Assembly (NCBI RefSeq): GCF_037042905.1
Contig: NC_087247.1
Span: 4,653,196 to 4,714,000 of the forward strand
Direction: 5' to 3'
DNA from: Lytechinus pictus
Taxonomy: Eukaryota
DNA: 60,805 nt
The notes beneath the pieces are model-generated. The model saw nothing but the letters and a program-made list of their open reading frames with translations. It had not been told where the DNA came from and did not search any database. Within the stretch, counting starts at the first letter, position 1, and each line of letters starts with the position of its first letter. The position numbers and the translations under genes are program-made. Of this stretch, positions 38,897 through 50,285 are shown piece by piece.

Positions 38897-39862
38897 TTTA
38901 AGGATTGGAAAATGTGTCATTAGTAGCTTCTATCCAGATCATTACTATCATACAGGAATGTCCCGAAACTAATCTGATGTGAAATATAAAATCAACCTGA
39001 TAGTACCGGTATCCAAATCTGACCATCTTCAAACTCAAGTGGAAGTGTCATATGAAATTAATGACAGAATAGATATTTACAGAGAAATTTATGAAAGCAC
39101 ATCGATCTCATTAGATATTCTAGCAATATTCTTGTCAAGAGACAAAAGTTAGGCCTAATCTACTATTGACAGTCGGATCGGCTGGCAACCAAGGAAAAAA
39201 GAGAGCCCTACAAAAATGGTAAAATAGTTTACTAGTGATTTGTTTATTTTCAAACTTTTCCCACAGAAAATACATGTTTGGAATAACAGTGAGGATCTCC
39301 CTGGTAATACAATACAATTTTCAAGTGACCAAAACACTTCACTGAAAGCCGATGTCATAAAAAAATATAAATTATTCTATTCAGATGGGATTTGCAAAAA
39401 AAAAATCATCTTGACTTCAAGCTACTTCTTAAGACAAGGATACATGTACAGGTAGGTTTGCGGAGGGGCTTCGTAGAACATCTCGAAGCAGTACCAGTAG
39501 CACCAGGGCGGCCCAGAGCAACAGCGTGTGAAACCTCCGCCTTGTGCTCTGGGACTGGGCCACTCAAGGGTTCATTACCATCCTGCCTGTGGGGAATCTA
39601 GGTAGGACTATGGTATGCCAATGCTGTACACAGCACACAATTTAAAAAATCATTAAAATATCACTTTTGTGACCAAAAATACTAATTTCCATACAATTGA
39701 TTTTATTTTTCATTAGTAACTTAGGAGTAATTTTTGTATTCACCAGAGTGCTTGAAAACTTGAATTTTGGGCATATTTTTGTGTACGCCCTCTATTGGTG
39801 CAAAGTATGGCAGTGAGTCCAAACTTCACGTGTGTCTATACTTCGCGGACGGTCATTTATCT

Positions 39863-40818
39863 AAACAAGTGGAATACCTCTGGCGGTCTCACCTGCATCA
39901 CGCGATTCAATATAGAAGCAGTGCTGACTTTGAAAACTACATAACTCGCACAAGATGTTTAGTGATACTTGGTTACTCTTATGTCCACGTTTTATGAACT
40001 AGACCAATGAATACACTTACAGAGATATGATGGTAATTCAACAAATACCCCCAACATGGCCAAAGTTCATTGACCTTACATGAACTTTGACCTTGAACAT
40101 GTGACCTAAAACTCGCACAGGATGTTCAGTGATACTTGATTACTCTTATGTCCAAGTTTCATGAGTCAGATCCATAAACTTTCAAAGTTATGATGGTAAT
40201 TCAACAGATACCCCCATTATGGCCAAAGTTCATTGACCTTTGACCTTGGTCATGTGACCTGAAATGTGCACAGGATGTTCAGTGATACTTGATTACTCTT
40301 ATGTCCAAGTTTTATGAACTAGACCAATATACTTTCAAAGTTATGATGGTAATTCAACAAATACCCCCAATTCGGCCAAAGTTCATTGACCCTAAATGAC
40401 ATTTTACCTTGGTCATATGACGTGAAACTCATGCAGGATGTTCAGTGATACTTGATTAATCTTATGTCCAAGTTTCATGAACAAGGTCCATATATTTTCT
40501 AAATTGATGACATTTAAAAAACTTAACCTTAGGTTAAGATTTTGATGTTGATTCCCCCAACATGGTCTAAGTTCATTGACCCTAAAAGGCCTAGGCTAAA
40601 TGACCTTTGACCGTGGTCATGTGACATGAAACTCAGGCAGGATGTTCAATAATACTTGATTAACCTTATGGCCAAGTTTGATGAAATAGGTCCATATACT
40701 TTCTAAGTTATGCTGTCATTTCAAAAACTTAACCTTCGGCTAAGATTTGGTGTTGACGCCGCCGCCGTCGGAAAAGTGGCGCCTATAGTCTCACTCTGCT
40801 ATGCAGGTGAGACAAAAA
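39863..40818 (-). mobile_element. Helentron-associated non-autonomous element (HINE/DINE-1-like) with internal ~160-bp tandem repeats
   Basis: Sub-terminal inverted repeats GTCTCACCTGCAT (39886-39898) / ATGCAGGTGAGAC (40801-40813), adjacent short IR GTCTCAC 40788-40794, (GCC)n microsatellite, five repeats containing gatgttcagtgatacttg and tgacctttgacc, A-run flanks. Confidence 0.75.
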
Positions 40819-41524
40819 CTAGCCAATATCCTTAAAATCTGAAATCAACGTAAAAAGCGACCTAAAATTACCCTTTGACTTAATTTTCTATAGGATGAGT
40901 TCAGTATTCATGAAAATATTGACAAAAGATCAGCAAATTTGTCACCGTTAGCGCCCGTTCCAAAGAAATCTGAAATTGTCAACAAGCAGCACGATATCAT
41001 CAGTTTGCAAGCAGATATCATAAAAAATGTGAGTTCAATGTGGCTGTTTCTCTAGCATTTTATCGTCAATCTGATATAAATATCTCACCTTTTGAGCTTG
41101 AGTTTTTAATCTCCACAAAAACTTTGGTCCGCGAAGTTAGGTCACACCTTTTCAGAACGGTTTTCCAACACAGCGCGCATTCGTCGATCAGAATAGAATT
41201 TTGAGATCGCGATACCGGCGAAGCCCCTTGATCTACTTCACATTTTCCTCAATGATTTTACAGTTAACGATCTTGCCGTCAATGTGGTAACTATTTCTTG
41301 AATTGGTTTTGTATATTGTGAATAATTTGTGAACAAATTTAAGCCCGATATATATTTTTGAAAAGTCCGCGAAGTTTGGACACCCCATCATAATATGGCA
41401 AGACAATTGTCAATTTTCAATCTCTATAATTAAGAAAAAATAATTTAAAGAATCAAATTTACCTAAGTCTAGAGCCAAGTTATATGATGAATAGCTGTAT
41501 GGAAACCGACAGTGTCAAAAAATC

Positions 41525-41673
41525 TAGACAGGAATAACCGTCGTTTCTGGGGATTTATTCAACAATTTCTGACATTTTACTATAATCCCCATTCATATGT
41601 ATTTACTATTGGTGAGTGAGCCAACGCAGTTCAGCGGAACAACCAAAATACAGAGACTGAAGCTTTTGGTCTA
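41525..41673. mobile_element. TAGAC...GTCTA mini-transposon with 9-bp TSD (AcademH-like), copy 2
   Basis: TSD CAAAAAATC at 41516-41524 and 41674-41682; the opposite arm of the large inverted repeat shows the empty site. Confidence 0.85.
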
Positions 41674-42007
41674 CAAAAAATCAAGCATTTATCCCAAAGA
41701 AAAAGAGAAAATAAGCCAAACATTGCCAACCATATTTCACCACACAGCCACAGGGAGTAGTAACAGAGAACAAGGACAGGTTATATCATAATTTCATTAG
41801 GCCTAAACCTTGTTCATAGAATGAGTGGGACTGGGCCACTCACACTAATACGAGGTTAGTATATGTATACATGACTGGGCTGGCTCACTCATCCTACGTC
41901 TACGAACGAGGTCTGGCTCAGCTCTGCATGATCTGGGACTCTGCTCTTAAGTTGAATAATGAATGGCTAAAATTAGTTTACAGCCCGATACGATATTTCA
42001 AACTTAC

Positions 42008-42220
42008 CAGGAAACTGCAGAAGGAAACGGTTAAGGACGACAATTCGTAGTTTAAAATCATTTACTCGTCTAGAAGACGGATTTGATGTGAGCAATGGAT
42101 TTCCTTCAAAACTAATTGTTAAAACTTCAAGACAAGGATGGCTATTCTGGCATCTCCGGCTAGTGTATATAAGCTTCGAACAATCCCTGTGATGAATTTG
42201 GGATGTGGTCGGGGATTCCC
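42008..42220 (-). promoter_or_regulatory. Putative promoter and non-coding first exon of the NEMO/OPTN gene
   Basis: Strong donor CTG|GTAAGT at 42008/42007, TATATA 42166-42171, kB site GGGGATTCCC 42211-42220. The first coding exon begins at an acceptor (38256), 17 nt before the ATG, which suggests an upstream non-coding exon. Confidence 0.55.
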
Positions 42221-43386
42221 AAAATAGATTGCCAATAACTTTACCGAGAGAAATTAGCATTTTTAATGAAAAAAAATCAAAATAATAAACTAATTAAATA
42301 ATATTTAAAAAAAAAACAATTTAATTTTAAATTTTTATGATCGTAAAACTGATCATATTTTTTTCTCACTCATTCAATGAACAAGGTTATGATATAACCT
42401 TGTTCTCAGTTATATCTCCATGTGTGGCAAAATAAGGATGGCAATGTTTGGCTTATTTTCTCTTTTTCTTTGGGACAAATGCTTGATTTTTTTACACTGA
42501 CAGTTTCCATTACACCTATTCGTCATACAACTTGGCCCTTAAGTAAATTCGATTCTTTAAATTATTTTTTTCTTAATTAAAAATAGAGATTAAAAAATGA
42601 AAATTTTCTTGCCATATTATTTTTCACCAATAGAGGGCGTACACAAAAATATGCCCAAAATTCAAGTTTTTGAGCGCTCTCGTGAATACAAAAATTATTC
42701 CCAAGTTACTAATGAAAAATAAATTGCAACTGTACGGAAATTAGTAATTTTGGTCACAAAAGTGATATCTTAATCATTTTTTAAAGTGTGTGCTCTGTAC
42801 AGCATTGGCATGCCATAGTCCAACCTGTAGATTCCCAACAGGCAGGGTGGTTGCATTTTTACAGGATGTGTATAAAATAAGACAAATTGGCAGTGCAGAT
42901 TCAGGGGAATCCCCGATCATTTCGCAATAACATAAAGGCGGGGAGATCTCTATGACATTAATCAGTGTAAACTAATCTAGGCTGCGTCTATTACTATAAT
43001 TCAAGAATATTTACACCAGGGAAGTTTCGTGTTTAGAAAGTATTGCAGTTTTCTTTTAGGGGAATTTAAATTTTCTTGATTATCCTTTAAAAAAATTTCA
43101 AACGAACACTATTATAATGCAAGAATAATGTAGCAAAAGGGGGAATCACATTAATGTTATGGTTGGCTATGCGACCCCTCTTTGATTCTTCAAATGGTGT
43201 AAAAGAAATAGTGTAAATAGAATTTTCAAAAATACTAAGAAGAAAATCATAGAAAAAAAATTTTGCTGTGTCTTGTAACTAAATAAAAATAATTACTGAT
43301 GAGGTTAAGAGTAGTTTCTTTCATTTTGAAGCATTATTTTTGTGCATTATTGAGAGAGAAAAATCGAAAGAAGGAGTTACGCCTAC

Positions 43387-45793: not shown

Positions 45794-48700
45794 TTATGAC
45801 GTCAAATTTGATGTCGCGTTGCTGCACAAATTATGAGATTTTTCAGGCCCCAGATCGATTAGAAGAGTGAAGTAAGTCAACACGAAACCAGCAATCTGAA
45901 AAATAAATAGATTAATAAATGAATAGAAAATAAATAAATGAACAAATAAATAAATAATTTAATAAACATATAAATAAATGAATAAATAATTATATGAATA
46001 AATAGATTTTAAAAAAATAAATAAATAAATGAATAAATAAATAAGACTCAGGAACTATAGGGATGATGAACGATTAATTTTGGAAAGAATTTGATAATTA
46101 GGGTAAGCAATGGGTTTTATGATGAAATTTCGTAAGGCGTGTAACTCAAGTCAATAAGTTCAGCGGGTATATAGCAAATGCATGTAATATGCATGGTTCA
46201 TAATAGCTCCATCACTTTAATTGTTTACTGTAATTGGTCAAGTAATTTATTCAGGAGCGGATCCAGCTTTTACCAGAAAGGGGATGAGAGGCGGTTGATT
46301 TCATCCCCCCATAAAAAGGTAAAAATTCACAACCACTCTGAAAAATTGTAGACGTGCCCCTTTGTCCCCTCATTGATAAGGGCCATATACATATAATTTA
46401 ATTTTTAAAAATTACCTTCTTCCAGGCAGTGGCGAATCCGTGCCCGCCTCCAGTTGAGAGCCATGATAAAACAATTTAATGTAATTATGCCGTTTTTACA
46501 CAAGTGTGCCCCCCCCCCTTTGAAAGTGCATGAGGACCTTTTTTTTGCTTGTCAAATTTTCATCTGGAAAATGTGCCCCATCTTTTTGAAAATCCTGGAT
46601 CCGCCTCTGCTTCCAGGGGTCCGTTTCATAAAACTATTTATAATAACAAATTTGCAATAACATTTAAAAGCTACCGAAATCCTTTAATCTAATAATTGGC
46701 AGATGGTAAATTTGTTATAGAAATTGTACATATAACAAGTCTTTATGAAACGGAACCCAGATCTTACCGTTAGAATGACATTCCTGGTGACAGTGAAGAA
46801 TCCAATGAATGAAAGCCCAATGTTTGGACCATTTAGGCGGGAAACCAGTAGCAGGTGAATCTGTTGATAAAGCAGGAATTATGAGGTACTTTAAGATTAT
46901 ATAAATGGAGATGGGATTTGGAACCAAGACTTTTTGATAGGCGTACGTAGTTTATAATCTTTTATTTTCTCCCCCCCTCCTTTCATTGTCTTGAAAAACC
47001 ATAGAGGATAGTCGCCCACCGGTCGCATTGCCCTGTCTCTTAACAATAAGAACAAGATCAAAATGATATATTGGAATATTGAAGCAATTAACAGATTTGA
47101 GACCTACTACCCGAAAAAAATCAATGTGGGGAAAATTTCAGTTCTTTCAAATAAAAAAGTTCGATAGAGTATATCTATAGTGGCAGGCAGAGTAAATGGA
47201 TAGTGACAGATAGTAATACACTTCACTTTATTATTTTTTATTACTTTTAATGACGTCATAGTCATGGTCTTGAGTAATTCTAGCTGTAGTCCCTAAATTT
47301 AACCCGTTCCTCCTACCCCCTTTGTGCAATTTAAATTAAGTGTCAACTTAGTCTTTGCCTGAATTATCTTTATAGGGTCAACACCCCCTTTTTAGATTAT
47401 GGATCCTGTTAACATTTTAAACCCATTATTTCATTCTCCATGAGACAAATCATACCATAAGACAATGATTACATAGTATTGCAATATCTCCGAGTCAATA
47501 AACGATATCACAAAATAAGAATGCCATTTTTTTCTTTTTCTCTCAATATTTTATTTTAGACCCCAAAATCTTTTTTTTTTCATCTGATAAATAAATGCAC
47601 AATATTGGAAATTACATGAGATATTCTGGTGTCACTTGCATCCACGTGAAGTTCATAGACATGTCGCCGCAATGAATGTGCCTGGTAAAAGAAAAAATGT
47701 CACTCATTAATTGTTATAAAGCCAAATTTGGTACTTTAAATATTTTCTTTCATATAAACCCCACTGATTTGAAAACCTATTTGATATTTATTTGTTTGTT
47801 TTATTTCATTCATGTATTTGTTTTTTGGGAGAGGGTGGGGGATATACAGAAATTATTTCATTATTATTTCCGTGGGGGAGGCTTACTTCAATGATGGGGA
47901 CAAGGGCTGTATTTGATTGGTCTTCAATTTAGCAGAGATTCTAACTAATTTCAGATCATCTAACACTGTCATTGCTAAGCAGTGGCGTACCTAGGATTTT
48001 CCACAGGGGGGGGGGGGGCAAAACCGTCCGCCAAAAAATTTGACAAGCAAAAAAAAAAAGGTCTTCAATCACAAATAAAGGATTTCGTAACAGAAAAAAA
48101 ATTGACAAGCAAAAGAAGAAAAAAAAAGTCTTCAAACTCGTCAGGGGGGCAATAAAGGTCTTCAAGCTCGTCAGGGGGGGGGGGGGGGAGCAAAAAAGGT
48201 CTTTCAAGCTCGTCAGGGGGGGGGGGCAGGGATACGCTGCTTTGCATGGGTTGTGGCTCGTCAGGGGGGGGGGGGGGGCAGACTGCCCCCCTGCCCCCCC
48301 CCCCGTAGGTACGCGCTTGTGTTGCTAAGGGCTAAACAAGCAATTTGGTCTAATTCTGTTTAGGTCCAACCGTTATTTGGTCTAATTACCGTTGGCTTAA
48401 CATAATCTAATGCCCAGGAGGTCTAGCTTTCACTTCGTCATCTTATTATTTTGCACTTGGTAAATCTAATGTATGTGGTTCATATCATGTAATGATATAT
48501 ATATATATATTATGTTGTGTTAGTGTAAGTGTAGGCCTATTAGACGAAATGGATGTAGCCTAACTGGAAGTTAGACAAGGTGGTTAGTTGATGATCTCGT
48601 TGTAGATAATCGAGGATTAGACCATGTGGGATTAGACCAAATTGAAAGTACACAATGTGGGTGCAGACCAAGTGGCAATTTAACTGAGATGATAATCAAT

Positions 48701-50285
48701 TTCTGAAGATATTTCAACCGATTTGTCAGGAATGTTCATCTCAGTGGCAGTGGAATGGTTTTGAAAGCGGGGCTTGAGCCAAAAGTGGGGGCGGGGACTG
48801 ACCATGCAAAAAATCACTATTAGATGGTCATTTTTACGTTTTAATTGTACATGGTTTTAGAAAAAAGTGGAGGAAGCCCCCCAGCCTATCTTCTGTTTCT
48901 GTGCCCCCTGCATCTTGTTTAAATAAATGACTGAGAGAATGCATCAAAAGAATGCCTCTTACATCATTAGTTTTTTTGTGCAAATGAAAATGACCATGAT
49001 AGTGTCAATTACAATTGCAACATTCAGTGTAGGATTGCCTAAATTTCATCGTGTCGGTATGGTGGCCCGGTATTGTGGAAGGGATGGGAAAAGGGGAAAG
49101 CGAAAGAAAGAGAGAGAGAGAGAGAGGGGGGGGGGGGGGGGGGGGCTCGAGTCCACTAAGGATACTAAAAAAAATCAGGACTCCTACCTTCTCATTAAGC
49201 ATTGAACAGCACCAGGAGATGAGCAAAATATTCAGCATATTTGAGACACCCCAGTAGGCATTCAAGGCAGTAGTAAAAGTGCTTGAACTGTCGCTGTTGA
49301 AATAAATATCATACATGAGAAAGATGAGCAGGGGGATGTCAGTGGCAAAGACAATGGCGACAAGTGTAGAGAAAATGTAGTCGCACTGTGATGTGAGAAG
49401 ACACAAAATGTTATGCTGTCGACGGGTCTCTTCCAGGACATCAGCCCTTGCGCAGGTACCTAGGGGGTTCTCCTCCTTGAAGGCTTTGGTGAGCGAGTCA
49501 AATCTCTCCGAAAGAACATAGCAAATGAGGCAAAGGTAGACAACAGGGAACTTGTGGCATGCCAAGGCAAAGAATGAAATGACTTGCAGGAAAGCACAGG
49601 GAATATCACTTGTCCAGGGCGAGCACATGATACGGATTTCTTCACCATGATAGCCGAAGGTGAAGTACATGGAGACGGGGTACGACCCAAGGATGAAAAA
49701 CCACCCTCCTAGTGCAGCCAGGATCCCAACCTTCTTGAACTTCTTCCGTTGCAACATGCACCTTGGCTTGGGAGACTGCGTGTCGACTGACCTGTGGTCG
49801 AAGTCCACCCGATGTCTTTCGGCGGAGGGGTTCTGCCAGTAGCTGAAGAAGCGCTGTATCTTGCAGGTTCTATAGCATGCCAGGAAGAGGACAGTGTTGG
49901 TTGTGGCATTTTGTACGTACCAGCACAAGTAAGATGCATTCTGTAGGTTTAAAGTTGGGGCAATGAAAACGAGAAAACGAACGAGATCAAACCACATGAC
50001 TAGGACAACGAAGGCATGATAGACGAAGCCGAGTCTGTTCAAGATGTTCCGGATGAAAGATTGATTCCTTTGTAGTGACTGCGCATCATCCTCTTGTTGA
50101 GCAGGATGAACTGCGACTCCAGATGGTGATCGTTCATGCCACAGACCCAACAGCTTCATACTGATAGTGACGGGTCTGCTCACCTCAGAGAACATGATGA
50201 TATCTCTATGAGAAGCCTTGCAAACATTTTCTTCTGATCCTTCAGCAGGCTGCTTAAGCCAAGTAGGTGATGAAGACATCTCCAT
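45794..50285 (-). CDS. Gustatory receptor-like (GRL) 7TM ion channel of the insect chemoreceptor superfamily, ~452 aa, 4 exons
   Basis: Exons 50285-49188, 47681-47616 (AHSLRRHVYELHVDASDTRISH), 46860-46768 (IHLLLVSRLNGPNIGLSFIGFFTVTRNVILT), 45895-45794 (IAGFVLTYFTLLIDLG...*). Three phase-0 GT-AG introns near the 3' end. Motifs MKLLGLW and RRQHNILC....DYIFS; multiple hydrophobic helices. Confidence 0.9.
45900..46045. repeat. (AAAT)n microsatellite in the last GRL intron
   Basis: Direct inspection. Confidence 0.85.
46616..46757. mobile_element. Harbinger-like palindromic MITE
   Basis: GGGGTCCGTTTCATAAA...TTTATGAAACGGAACCC with CAG flanks. Confidence 0.7.
47980..48319. mobile_element. CAGTGGCGTACCTA-type element with internal G-run tandem repeats
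   Basis: Inverted termini gcgtaccta/taggtacgc; internal repeats (gtcttcaag)ctcgtcaggggg x4. Confidence 0.65.

Follow-up and report, generated by a model that had tools for sequence, protein, structure and literature searches.

Whether an echinoderm carries an intact relative of the insect taste and smell channels, and what the pore of such a protein might do, is the question raised by a 60,805-nucleotide stretch of the Lytechinus pictus genome (contig NC_087247.1, positions 4,653,196 to 4,714,000; hereafter the window). The locus in question, LOC129256585, lies on the minus strand at window positions 45794-50285. To our knowledge, gustatory-receptor-like proteins (GRLs) are the only deuterostome relatives of the insect taste and smell channels, and we know of none for which a ligand or a recorded current is available. 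The original prediction, made from the letters of the window, described a complete insect-type gustatory-receptor-like channel with three hidden exons near its 3' end, and proposed as checks a search with the 7tm_7 profile and a tetramer structure prediction, to be compared with the structures of Orco and of gustatory receptors (Gr). The analysis presented here indicates that LOC129256585 is an intact four-exon gene under purifying selection, which encodes a 452-residue GRL of the seven-transmembrane (7TM) ion channel superfamily.

A four-exon gene and its conservation among sea urchins

The longest open reading frame (ORF) of the window comprises 426 residues (49005-50285, minus strand), the runner-up being a low-complexity frame of 163 residues. 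Reading of the gene model directly from the window DNA and the ORF translations yields the following features, the helices and the sides of the membrane being as predicted from structural models:

49188-50285, minus strand: coding part of exon 1, residues 1-366 (366 codons, 1098 nucleotides), with the ATG at 50285; cytoplasmic N-terminal stretch, re-entrant helix S0, and transmembrane (TM) helices TM1-TM6
49005-49187, minus strand: read-through start of intron 1, non-coding; gt at 49187-49186, then poly-C and CT repeats
47682-49187, minus strand: intron 1, phase 0, 1506 nucleotides, GT..AG
47616-47681, minus strand: exon 2, residues 367-388 (22 residues, 66 nucleotides); cytoplasmic TM6-TM7 loop and start of TM7a
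46861-47615, minus strand: intron 2, phase 0; set one codon earlier than in genes from outside the echinoids
46768-46860, minus strand: exon 3, residues 389-419 (31 residues, 93 nucleotides); rest of TM7a, hairpin loop, and first turns of TM7b; predicted tetramer contacts at residues 384-400 and 407-418
45896-46767, minus strand: intron 3, holding a TTTA-rich stretch at 45997-46052; its column matches that of the aligned relatives
45794-45895, minus strand: exon 4, residues 420-452 (33 residues and TAA); pore helix TM7b and 18-residue extracellular tail
45851-45877, minus strand: TM7 motif TYFTLLIDL, residues 426-434, aligned to the family consensus TYFxxLxQF

A canonical donor (AAG/gtaggagt) directly follows base 49188, and the last 60 residues of the 426-residue ORF are intron read-through (poly-C/CT), missing from the orthologous proteins. 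Exon 2 is bounded by ttaccag/GCACAT…TCTCAT/gtaatt and exon 3 by atcaacag/ATTCAC…CTAACG/gtaaga, while exon 4 follows the acceptor tttttcag/ATTGCT… and ends in TCATAA. All three introns display GT-AG sites, and the exon lengths of 1098, 66, and 93 nucleotides place all of them in phase 0. The spliced product of 452 residues, which lacks the read-through segment, is identical, residue for residue, to the RefSeq protein XP_054750727.2 (L. pictus LOC129256585, "uncharacterized protein"). The splice at 49188 to three small exons had thus been placed exactly by the original prediction, coordinates included. The exons that it called hidden are however in the public annotation, since this identical L. 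pictus RefSeq model is matched by four-exon models in L. variegatus and Strongylocentrotus purpuratus. Gene, exon structure, and family are all already public, the family having been published for echinoderms since 2015, and the present result is therefore a confirmation rather than a discovery. The older RefSeq version XP_054750727.1 differs from XP_054750727.2 at 7 of 452 residues, differences that we take to be allelic and that would point to high allelic polymorphism.

A search with exon 1 returns a 452-residue protein of L. variegatus (LOC121411727, 96% identity) as well as S. purpuratus LOC105439903. The S. purpuratus orthologue (XP_011667752; UniProt A0A7M7HE86, 446 residues) carries the UniProt label "Gustatory receptor". 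One-to-one orthologues are found in at least three sea urchin species, with 69-96% identity and conserved synteny. The next gene downstream in L. variegatus and S. purpuratus is NEMO/optineurin-like (Pfam CC2-LZ and zf_C2H2_10), which fits an earlier reading of window positions 39577-42851 (minus strand, below ~42900), so that the gene pair is syntenic across the three sea urchins.

Alignment to the L. variegatus locus distinguishes the exons from their surroundings. The four exons align gap-free with 94.6-97.1% identity (97%, ungapped, for exon 2), whereas intron and flank blocks reach 72-86% identity with many gaps. The splice sites are the same in L. variegatus, and the same four exons exist in S. 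purpuratus (small exons of 22, 31, and 33 residues). No frame break occurs in the four exons across the three species, and the ratio of non-synonymous to synonymous substitution rates (dN/dS) versus L. variegatus amounts to 0.13 for the entire coding sequence (35.5 synonymous versus 17.5 non-synonymous differences) and 0.22 over exons 2-4. These comparisons establish, at the level of sequence, a four-exon gene that is intact and under purifying selection, as had been proposed. The exons were also sought with profiles built from 62 relatives (43 for the last exon), from which the known sea urchin rows had been removed against circularity, and with which all 2772 ORF pieces of the window were scanned. 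Exon 1 is the top match (E-value 5e-61), its alignment ending exactly at 49188, and exons 3 and 4 are also the top matches of their profiles (E-values 2.8e-12 and 3.1e-5, respectively). Readings as a pseudogene or as a chance ORF were rejected on the dN/dS, the profile E-values, and the structural match described below.

One rival reading takes the open frame for a prediction artefact, or for that of a gene that is silent or in decay. The public Logan/ENA proteins P0003, P0166, and P0170, considered as evidence for splicing, were rejected because they end in first-donor read-through (…NEKVR…); the contigs with S. purpuratus-like copies (P0166 and P0170) hence represent unspliced DNA or pre-mRNA. 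This reading has very little to recommend it, given the dN/dS of 0.13, the unbroken frames of four exons in three species, the splice sites identical in L. variegatus, and introns that diverge far faster than the exons. The shares of sampled words found in sequencing runs (0.27-0.33 for organism A and ~0.1 for organism B) were discarded as evidence for expression, since they equal the exon fraction of the stretch yet also fit polymorphic DNA.

Several observations concern the introns and isoforms. Besides the TTTA/TTTATT-rich simple repeat of intron 3 (45997-46052), window positions 47990-48310 in intron 1 (minus strand) contain several units of ~30 bases made of a poly-C run and a TGACGAGCTTGAAGACC-like sequence, with flanking poly-G/poly-C tracts. 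The 48-52 kb region has a GC content of 0.39-0.46 and a GC skew of +0.2, the maximum of the window. In S. purpuratus, isoform X2 (415 residues) skips exon 3 (31 residues) in frame, as phase-0 introns permit. This isoform, real or a prediction artefact, would be devoid of most of TM7a and of the start of TM7b; its exact mapping onto the S. purpuratus assembly returned no placement.

Family assignment and fold

The 7tm_7 search assigns the spliced protein to this family (Pfam PF08395; 48.6 bits versus a cut-off of 26.6, profile positions 152-364 out of 370 in total). Exon 1 alone scores 31.1 bits, and the Pfam family Trehalose_recp reports a further hit (44.8 bits versus a cut-off of 21). An exhaustive phmmer search identifies 242 relatives at E ≤ 0.001, of which the nameable ones belong to other echinoderms, hemichordates, cnidarians, a mollusc, an annelid, a horseshoe crab, and a tardigrade, several being auto-named gustatory receptors. 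A profile of 65 relatives matches the sequence of the structurally solved Drosophila Gr64a over nearly its full length (E-value 1.6e-33), and also matches MhOr5, Orco, Gr43a, and BmGr9.

The structural models agree with this assignment. AlphaFold2 predicts the window protein with a mean predicted local distance difference test (pLDDT) of 85.5 and a predicted template modelling score (pTM) of 0.86, and the L. variegatus orthologue with values of 85.8 and 0.87 and the same helices. The helices of the model are as follows:

S0: residues 26-45
TM1: residues 69-108
TM2: residues 114-138
TM3: residues 175-211
TM4: residues 227-272
TM5: residues 281-329
TM6: residues 336-367
TM7a: residues 384-397
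TM7b: residues 414-434

A length of 452 residues and seven transmembrane helices (S0, TM1-TM6, and a TM7 split into TM7a and TM7b) fit the family size of ~350-500 residues and the fold of odorant receptors (Or) and Grs. VIA-align superimposes the window model on 19 Gr/Or/Orco entries with Z-scores of 29-32 (root-mean-square deviation (rmsd) 3.0-4.0 Å, 350-366 residues), the best being Gr64a (Z 32.2, rmsd 3.3 Å, 366 residues), while the best unrelated entry scores 7.6; the orthologue model gives the same picture. With the latter model, Foldseek reports as its 24 best matches in the PDB exclusively insect Or, Gr, and Orco structures (target-normalised TM-score 0.58-0.72), beyond which values fall sharply to an E-value of 0.085 and TM-scores below 0.2. 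A G-protein-coupled receptor was considered and rejected, such entries reaching Z ~6 with an rmsd above 10 Å. Taken together, the 7tm_7 score, the Gr64a profile match, and the Gr/Or/Orco fold make the protein a GRL member of the 7TM ion channel superfamily that includes the insect Gr, Or, and Orco proteins, which agrees with the earlier assignment and with the expected channel fold.

Since the models superimpose over their whole length on solved Gr and Orco chains, the N-terminus would be intracellular and the C-terminus extracellular, the reverse of G-protein-coupled receptors. This topology fits the presence of two N-glycosylation sequons in the C-terminal tail (N445 and N449), one of which is kept in S. 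purpuratus. As exon 1 ends at residue 366, TM6 (residues 336-367) lies in the big exon, and the idea that the small exons supply TM6 and TM7 holds for TM7 but not for TM6. According to the models, the three small exons encode the TM6-TM7 loop, TM7a, the hairpin, TM7b, and the 18-residue tail.

The diagnostic features of animal GRLs are the conserved 3' introns and the TM7 motif (PMC7746228), and three phase-0 introns at the 3' end mark the superfamily (PMC9998090, PMC7746228). Six relatives were mapped exactly to their genomic loci: horseshoe crab (Tachypleus), Nematostella, Ptychodera, Biomphalaria, Acanthaster, and a sea urchin paralogue, the arthropod side of the comparison thus being a horseshoe crab and not an insect. 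All six possess a large exon followed by three phase-0 introns at the 3' end. The sizes of the exons that follow are:

Non-echinoids: small exon 2 of 23 residues, small exon 3 of 30 residues, last exon of 16-21 residues
Sea urchin genes (L. pictus gene, S. purpuratus orthologue, L. variegatus paralogue): 22 residues, 31 residues, last exon of 33-45 residues

In the alignment, introns 1 and 3 share their columns with those of Tachypleus, Biomphalaria, Nematostella, and Ptychodera. Acanthaster and the sea urchin paralogue, judged by their exon maps, exhibit the same boundary between the large exon and 'AH...', and the small exons of Acanthaster comprise 23 and 30 residues. The view of the three phase-0 introns as an ancestral signature of the superfamily, also taken from the literature by the original prediction, is borne out in these six animal genes. 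In sea urchins, intron 2 is displaced by exactly one codon towards the 5' end, a shift common to two paralogue lineages, the five other taxa displaying the 23 + 30 pattern. The shift amounts either to a 3-nucleotide intron slide or to paired one-codon changes.

In a tree of 19 sequences, the gene is united with its orthologues from sea urchins in a long-stemmed clade with full support, which joins the sea urchin paralogue cluster (support 86/74) and not the chelicerate or tardigrade sequences. This grouping agrees with the shared 22 + 31 exon pattern. With its few rows and long branches, the same tree does not place the gene inside the arthropod Grs, that is, in the insect Gr family sensu stricto. 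Ten or more further GRL first exons, all 23-29% identical to the gene, are present in the same genome, eight of them on contig 5 and two on contig 8. Those on contig 5 lie outside the window (7886511-7994824, minus strand), where eight large first exons (E-values 1e-39 to 1e-77) accompany three sets of small C-terminal exons, a layout implying that 1, 2, and 5 alternative first exons are spliced to shared TM7 exons. The RefSeq models of L. variegatus at the paralogous locus comprise two products that start with distinct first exons and share their end. Alternative first exons joined to a shared end are also a feature of Drosophila Gr23a, Gr28b, and Gr39a.

The predicted tetramer and pore, and the possible roles

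The assembly was modelled with four copies of a fragment of the L. variegatus orthologue (96% identity) that runs from TM4 to the C-terminus (residues 227-452). The runs return interaction prediction scores from aligned errors (ipSAE) of 0.71, 0.69, and 0.72, versus 0.00 for the best control, agree in at least 94% of contacts, and display a partner pLDDT of at least 75. In calibration, this mark was reached by 21 of 30 same-chain pairs and by none of 23 single-chain proteins. The confident contacts cover residues 292-299 (TM5), 371-400 (loop and TM7a), 407-418, and 425-434 (TM7b), so that the interface is nearly all encoded by the three small exons. The tetramer check proposed at the outset hence returns, at the level of prediction, a positive answer for TM4-TM7 of the orthologue (0.71 versus 0.00), to which memory of solved complexes may contribute.

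The published TM7 motif, (T/S)Yhhhhh(Q/K/E)(F/L/M), is called diagnostic but not definitive (PMC7746228). The T, the Y, and the final L of TYFTLLIDL fit this motif, and the middle five residues are hydrophobic except for one T. Among the 66 other aligned rows, position 8 is Q in 52, E in 5, and D in 2, both D rows belonging to the orthologue group of the gene itself, while position 9 is F in 41 and L in 14. The S. purpuratus orthologue reads TYFTLLVDL. In BmGr9, the T forms a hydrophilic ring and the Y touches lipids in the pore; a double hydrophobic gate is built from the middle hydrophobic residue together with the final F, the outer residue being L473 in Orco, and the motif Q swings into the pore upon opening (PMC11100771). 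By analogy, the sea urchin motif would keep every one of these roles but would present an aspartate ring when open.

If we assume that the protein works as its relatives do, four subunits would gather round a central pore. The big first exon would provide the ligand-binding bundle (S0 and TM1-TM6), and the three small exons a module that joins the tetramer through the TM6-TM7 loop and TM7a, its cytoplasmic anchor, and lines the pore through TM7b. Within TM7b, the hydrophilic ring would be formed by T426, with L430 acting as the inner hydrophobic gate and L434, like Orco L473, as the outer hydrophobic plug. Upon opening, the residue that turns into the pore would be D433 rather than the usual glutamine, creating an acidic ring that would suit cation flow. 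Ligand-gated channel activity may be expected on the same grounds of analogy.

Five points weigh against this interpretation. Position 8 of the motif is D, which is outside the published Q/K/E set, albeit chemically next to E (PMC7746228). Ion conduction has been shown for no GRL outside insects and nematodes (PMC9998090). The tetramer result may reflect the model's memory of solved relatives, and its calibration rests on two copies rather than four. Exon 2 was not recovered by the sea-urchin-free profiles, its true position being outside the top three among the 2772 ORF pieces; this poorly conserved loop rests on its splice sites, its identity with L. variegatus, and the same exon in the L. 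variegatus and S. purpuratus models. Lastly, the runs that hold ~0.3 of the sampled words are either RNA or polymorphic DNA, which are indistinguishable here. A literature search on echinoderm GRL function or tube-foot expression returned nothing relevant, and functional work beyond early developmental expression in S. purpuratus was not found, in keeping with the original statement that GRLs occur in echinoderms, for which the family is published, but are barely characterised.

The contig 5 cluster suggests another role, that of an obligate partner subunit in the manner of the Orco co-receptor, which would form heteromers with the diversified contig 5 GRLs instead of a homomeric receptor. The gene is single-copy with one first exon and its one-to-one orthologues are conserved in sequence and synteny as described above, whereas its sister lineage in this genome consists of eight clustered ligand-side exons, either alternative or duplicated; like Orco, moreover, the gene product has L at the outer gate (PMC11100771). 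We consider this role unlikely, though not negligible, since the predicted TM4-TM7 homotetramer passes its controls, homomers are common among insect Grs whose motifs are ordinary, and L occupies the outer gate position in 14 of the 66 aligned rows.

The replacement of the gating glutamine by D could also be read as the mark of a GRL fold that is not chemically gated, acting in developmental patterning, a role put forward for Nematostella Grl1, or else serving as a light or temperature sensor like LITE-1 and Gr28b. The GRLs of S. purpuratus and Nematostella are expressed early in development, and some family members are involved in light sensing, thermosensing, or the control of egg-laying (PMC7746228). 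We rate such a role as rather improbable: the motif retains the T, the Y, and its middle and terminal hydrophobic residues, and the TM7b exon is conserved in three sea urchins, which fits a working pore. Besides, a developmental role and channel activity are mutually compatible. More speculative still, the aspartate ring together with the Orco-like leucine plug might denote a specialised subunit, either a co-receptor of the contig 5 GRLs or a channel with an unusual conduction, for example divalent-preferring or constitutive. This has little probability in our estimate; if true, an Orco-like division of labour would for the first time be known from an animal other than an insect.

A GRL that probably works as a channel, encoded by an intact gene, remains our preferred reading of LOC129256585. 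L. pictus is a genetically tractable sea urchin. The verified gene model offers a usable start for knock-out and expression work, aided by the single first exon, the intact pore module, the clear orthologues in two other laboratory species, and the distinctive aspartate of the gate.

Comparison with insect receptors and other GRLs

The sugar receptor Gr64a of Drosophila melanogaster (PDB 8JME and 8ZE0) is the best solved relative, both by sequence profile and by structure. Both proteins share the same order of S0, TM1-TM6, TM7a, and TM7b, with the TM7 motif at the same place. They are however only 12% identical, the sea urchin motif ends in DL instead of QF, and the sea urchin protein possesses an 18-residue glycosylatable C-terminal tail. 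Since this likeness to a sugar receptor is common to cnidarian, mollusc, and hemichordate GRLs, no ligand can be deduced from the Gr64a match.

Orco and the Ors branched off from the Grs and are confined to insects. Orco (PDB 6C70) and the homomeric MhOr5 (PDB 7LIC) exhibit the same fold as the sea urchin model (Z 31.5 and 29.4, respectively) and assemble as tetramers through a TM7a anchor and a TM7b pore, an arrangement also predicted for the sea urchin protein. The putative outer hydrophobic plug is a leucine as in Orco (L473; PMC11100771). In contrast with Orco and the Ors, the sea urchin gene falls among GRLs of sea urchins.

Bombyx mori Gr9 (PDB 8UVT and 8VC1), a fructose-gated cation channel, also shares the fold (Z 30). 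Its motif is TYLVILIQF, and the two proteins differ at the gate, where the sea urchin D433 and L434 correspond to the gating Q443 and to F444 of BmGr9.

Among the published non-insect GRLs, SpurGRL1, SkowGRL1, and NvecGRL1 (Robertson 2015; Saina et al. 2015; Benton et al. 2020) resemble the L. pictus protein in family, length, 7TM fold, 3' introns, and, apart from its D at position 8, the TM7 motif. SpurGRL1, although from the same phylum, is the product of a different gene, with a different N-terminus and an F at motif position 2.

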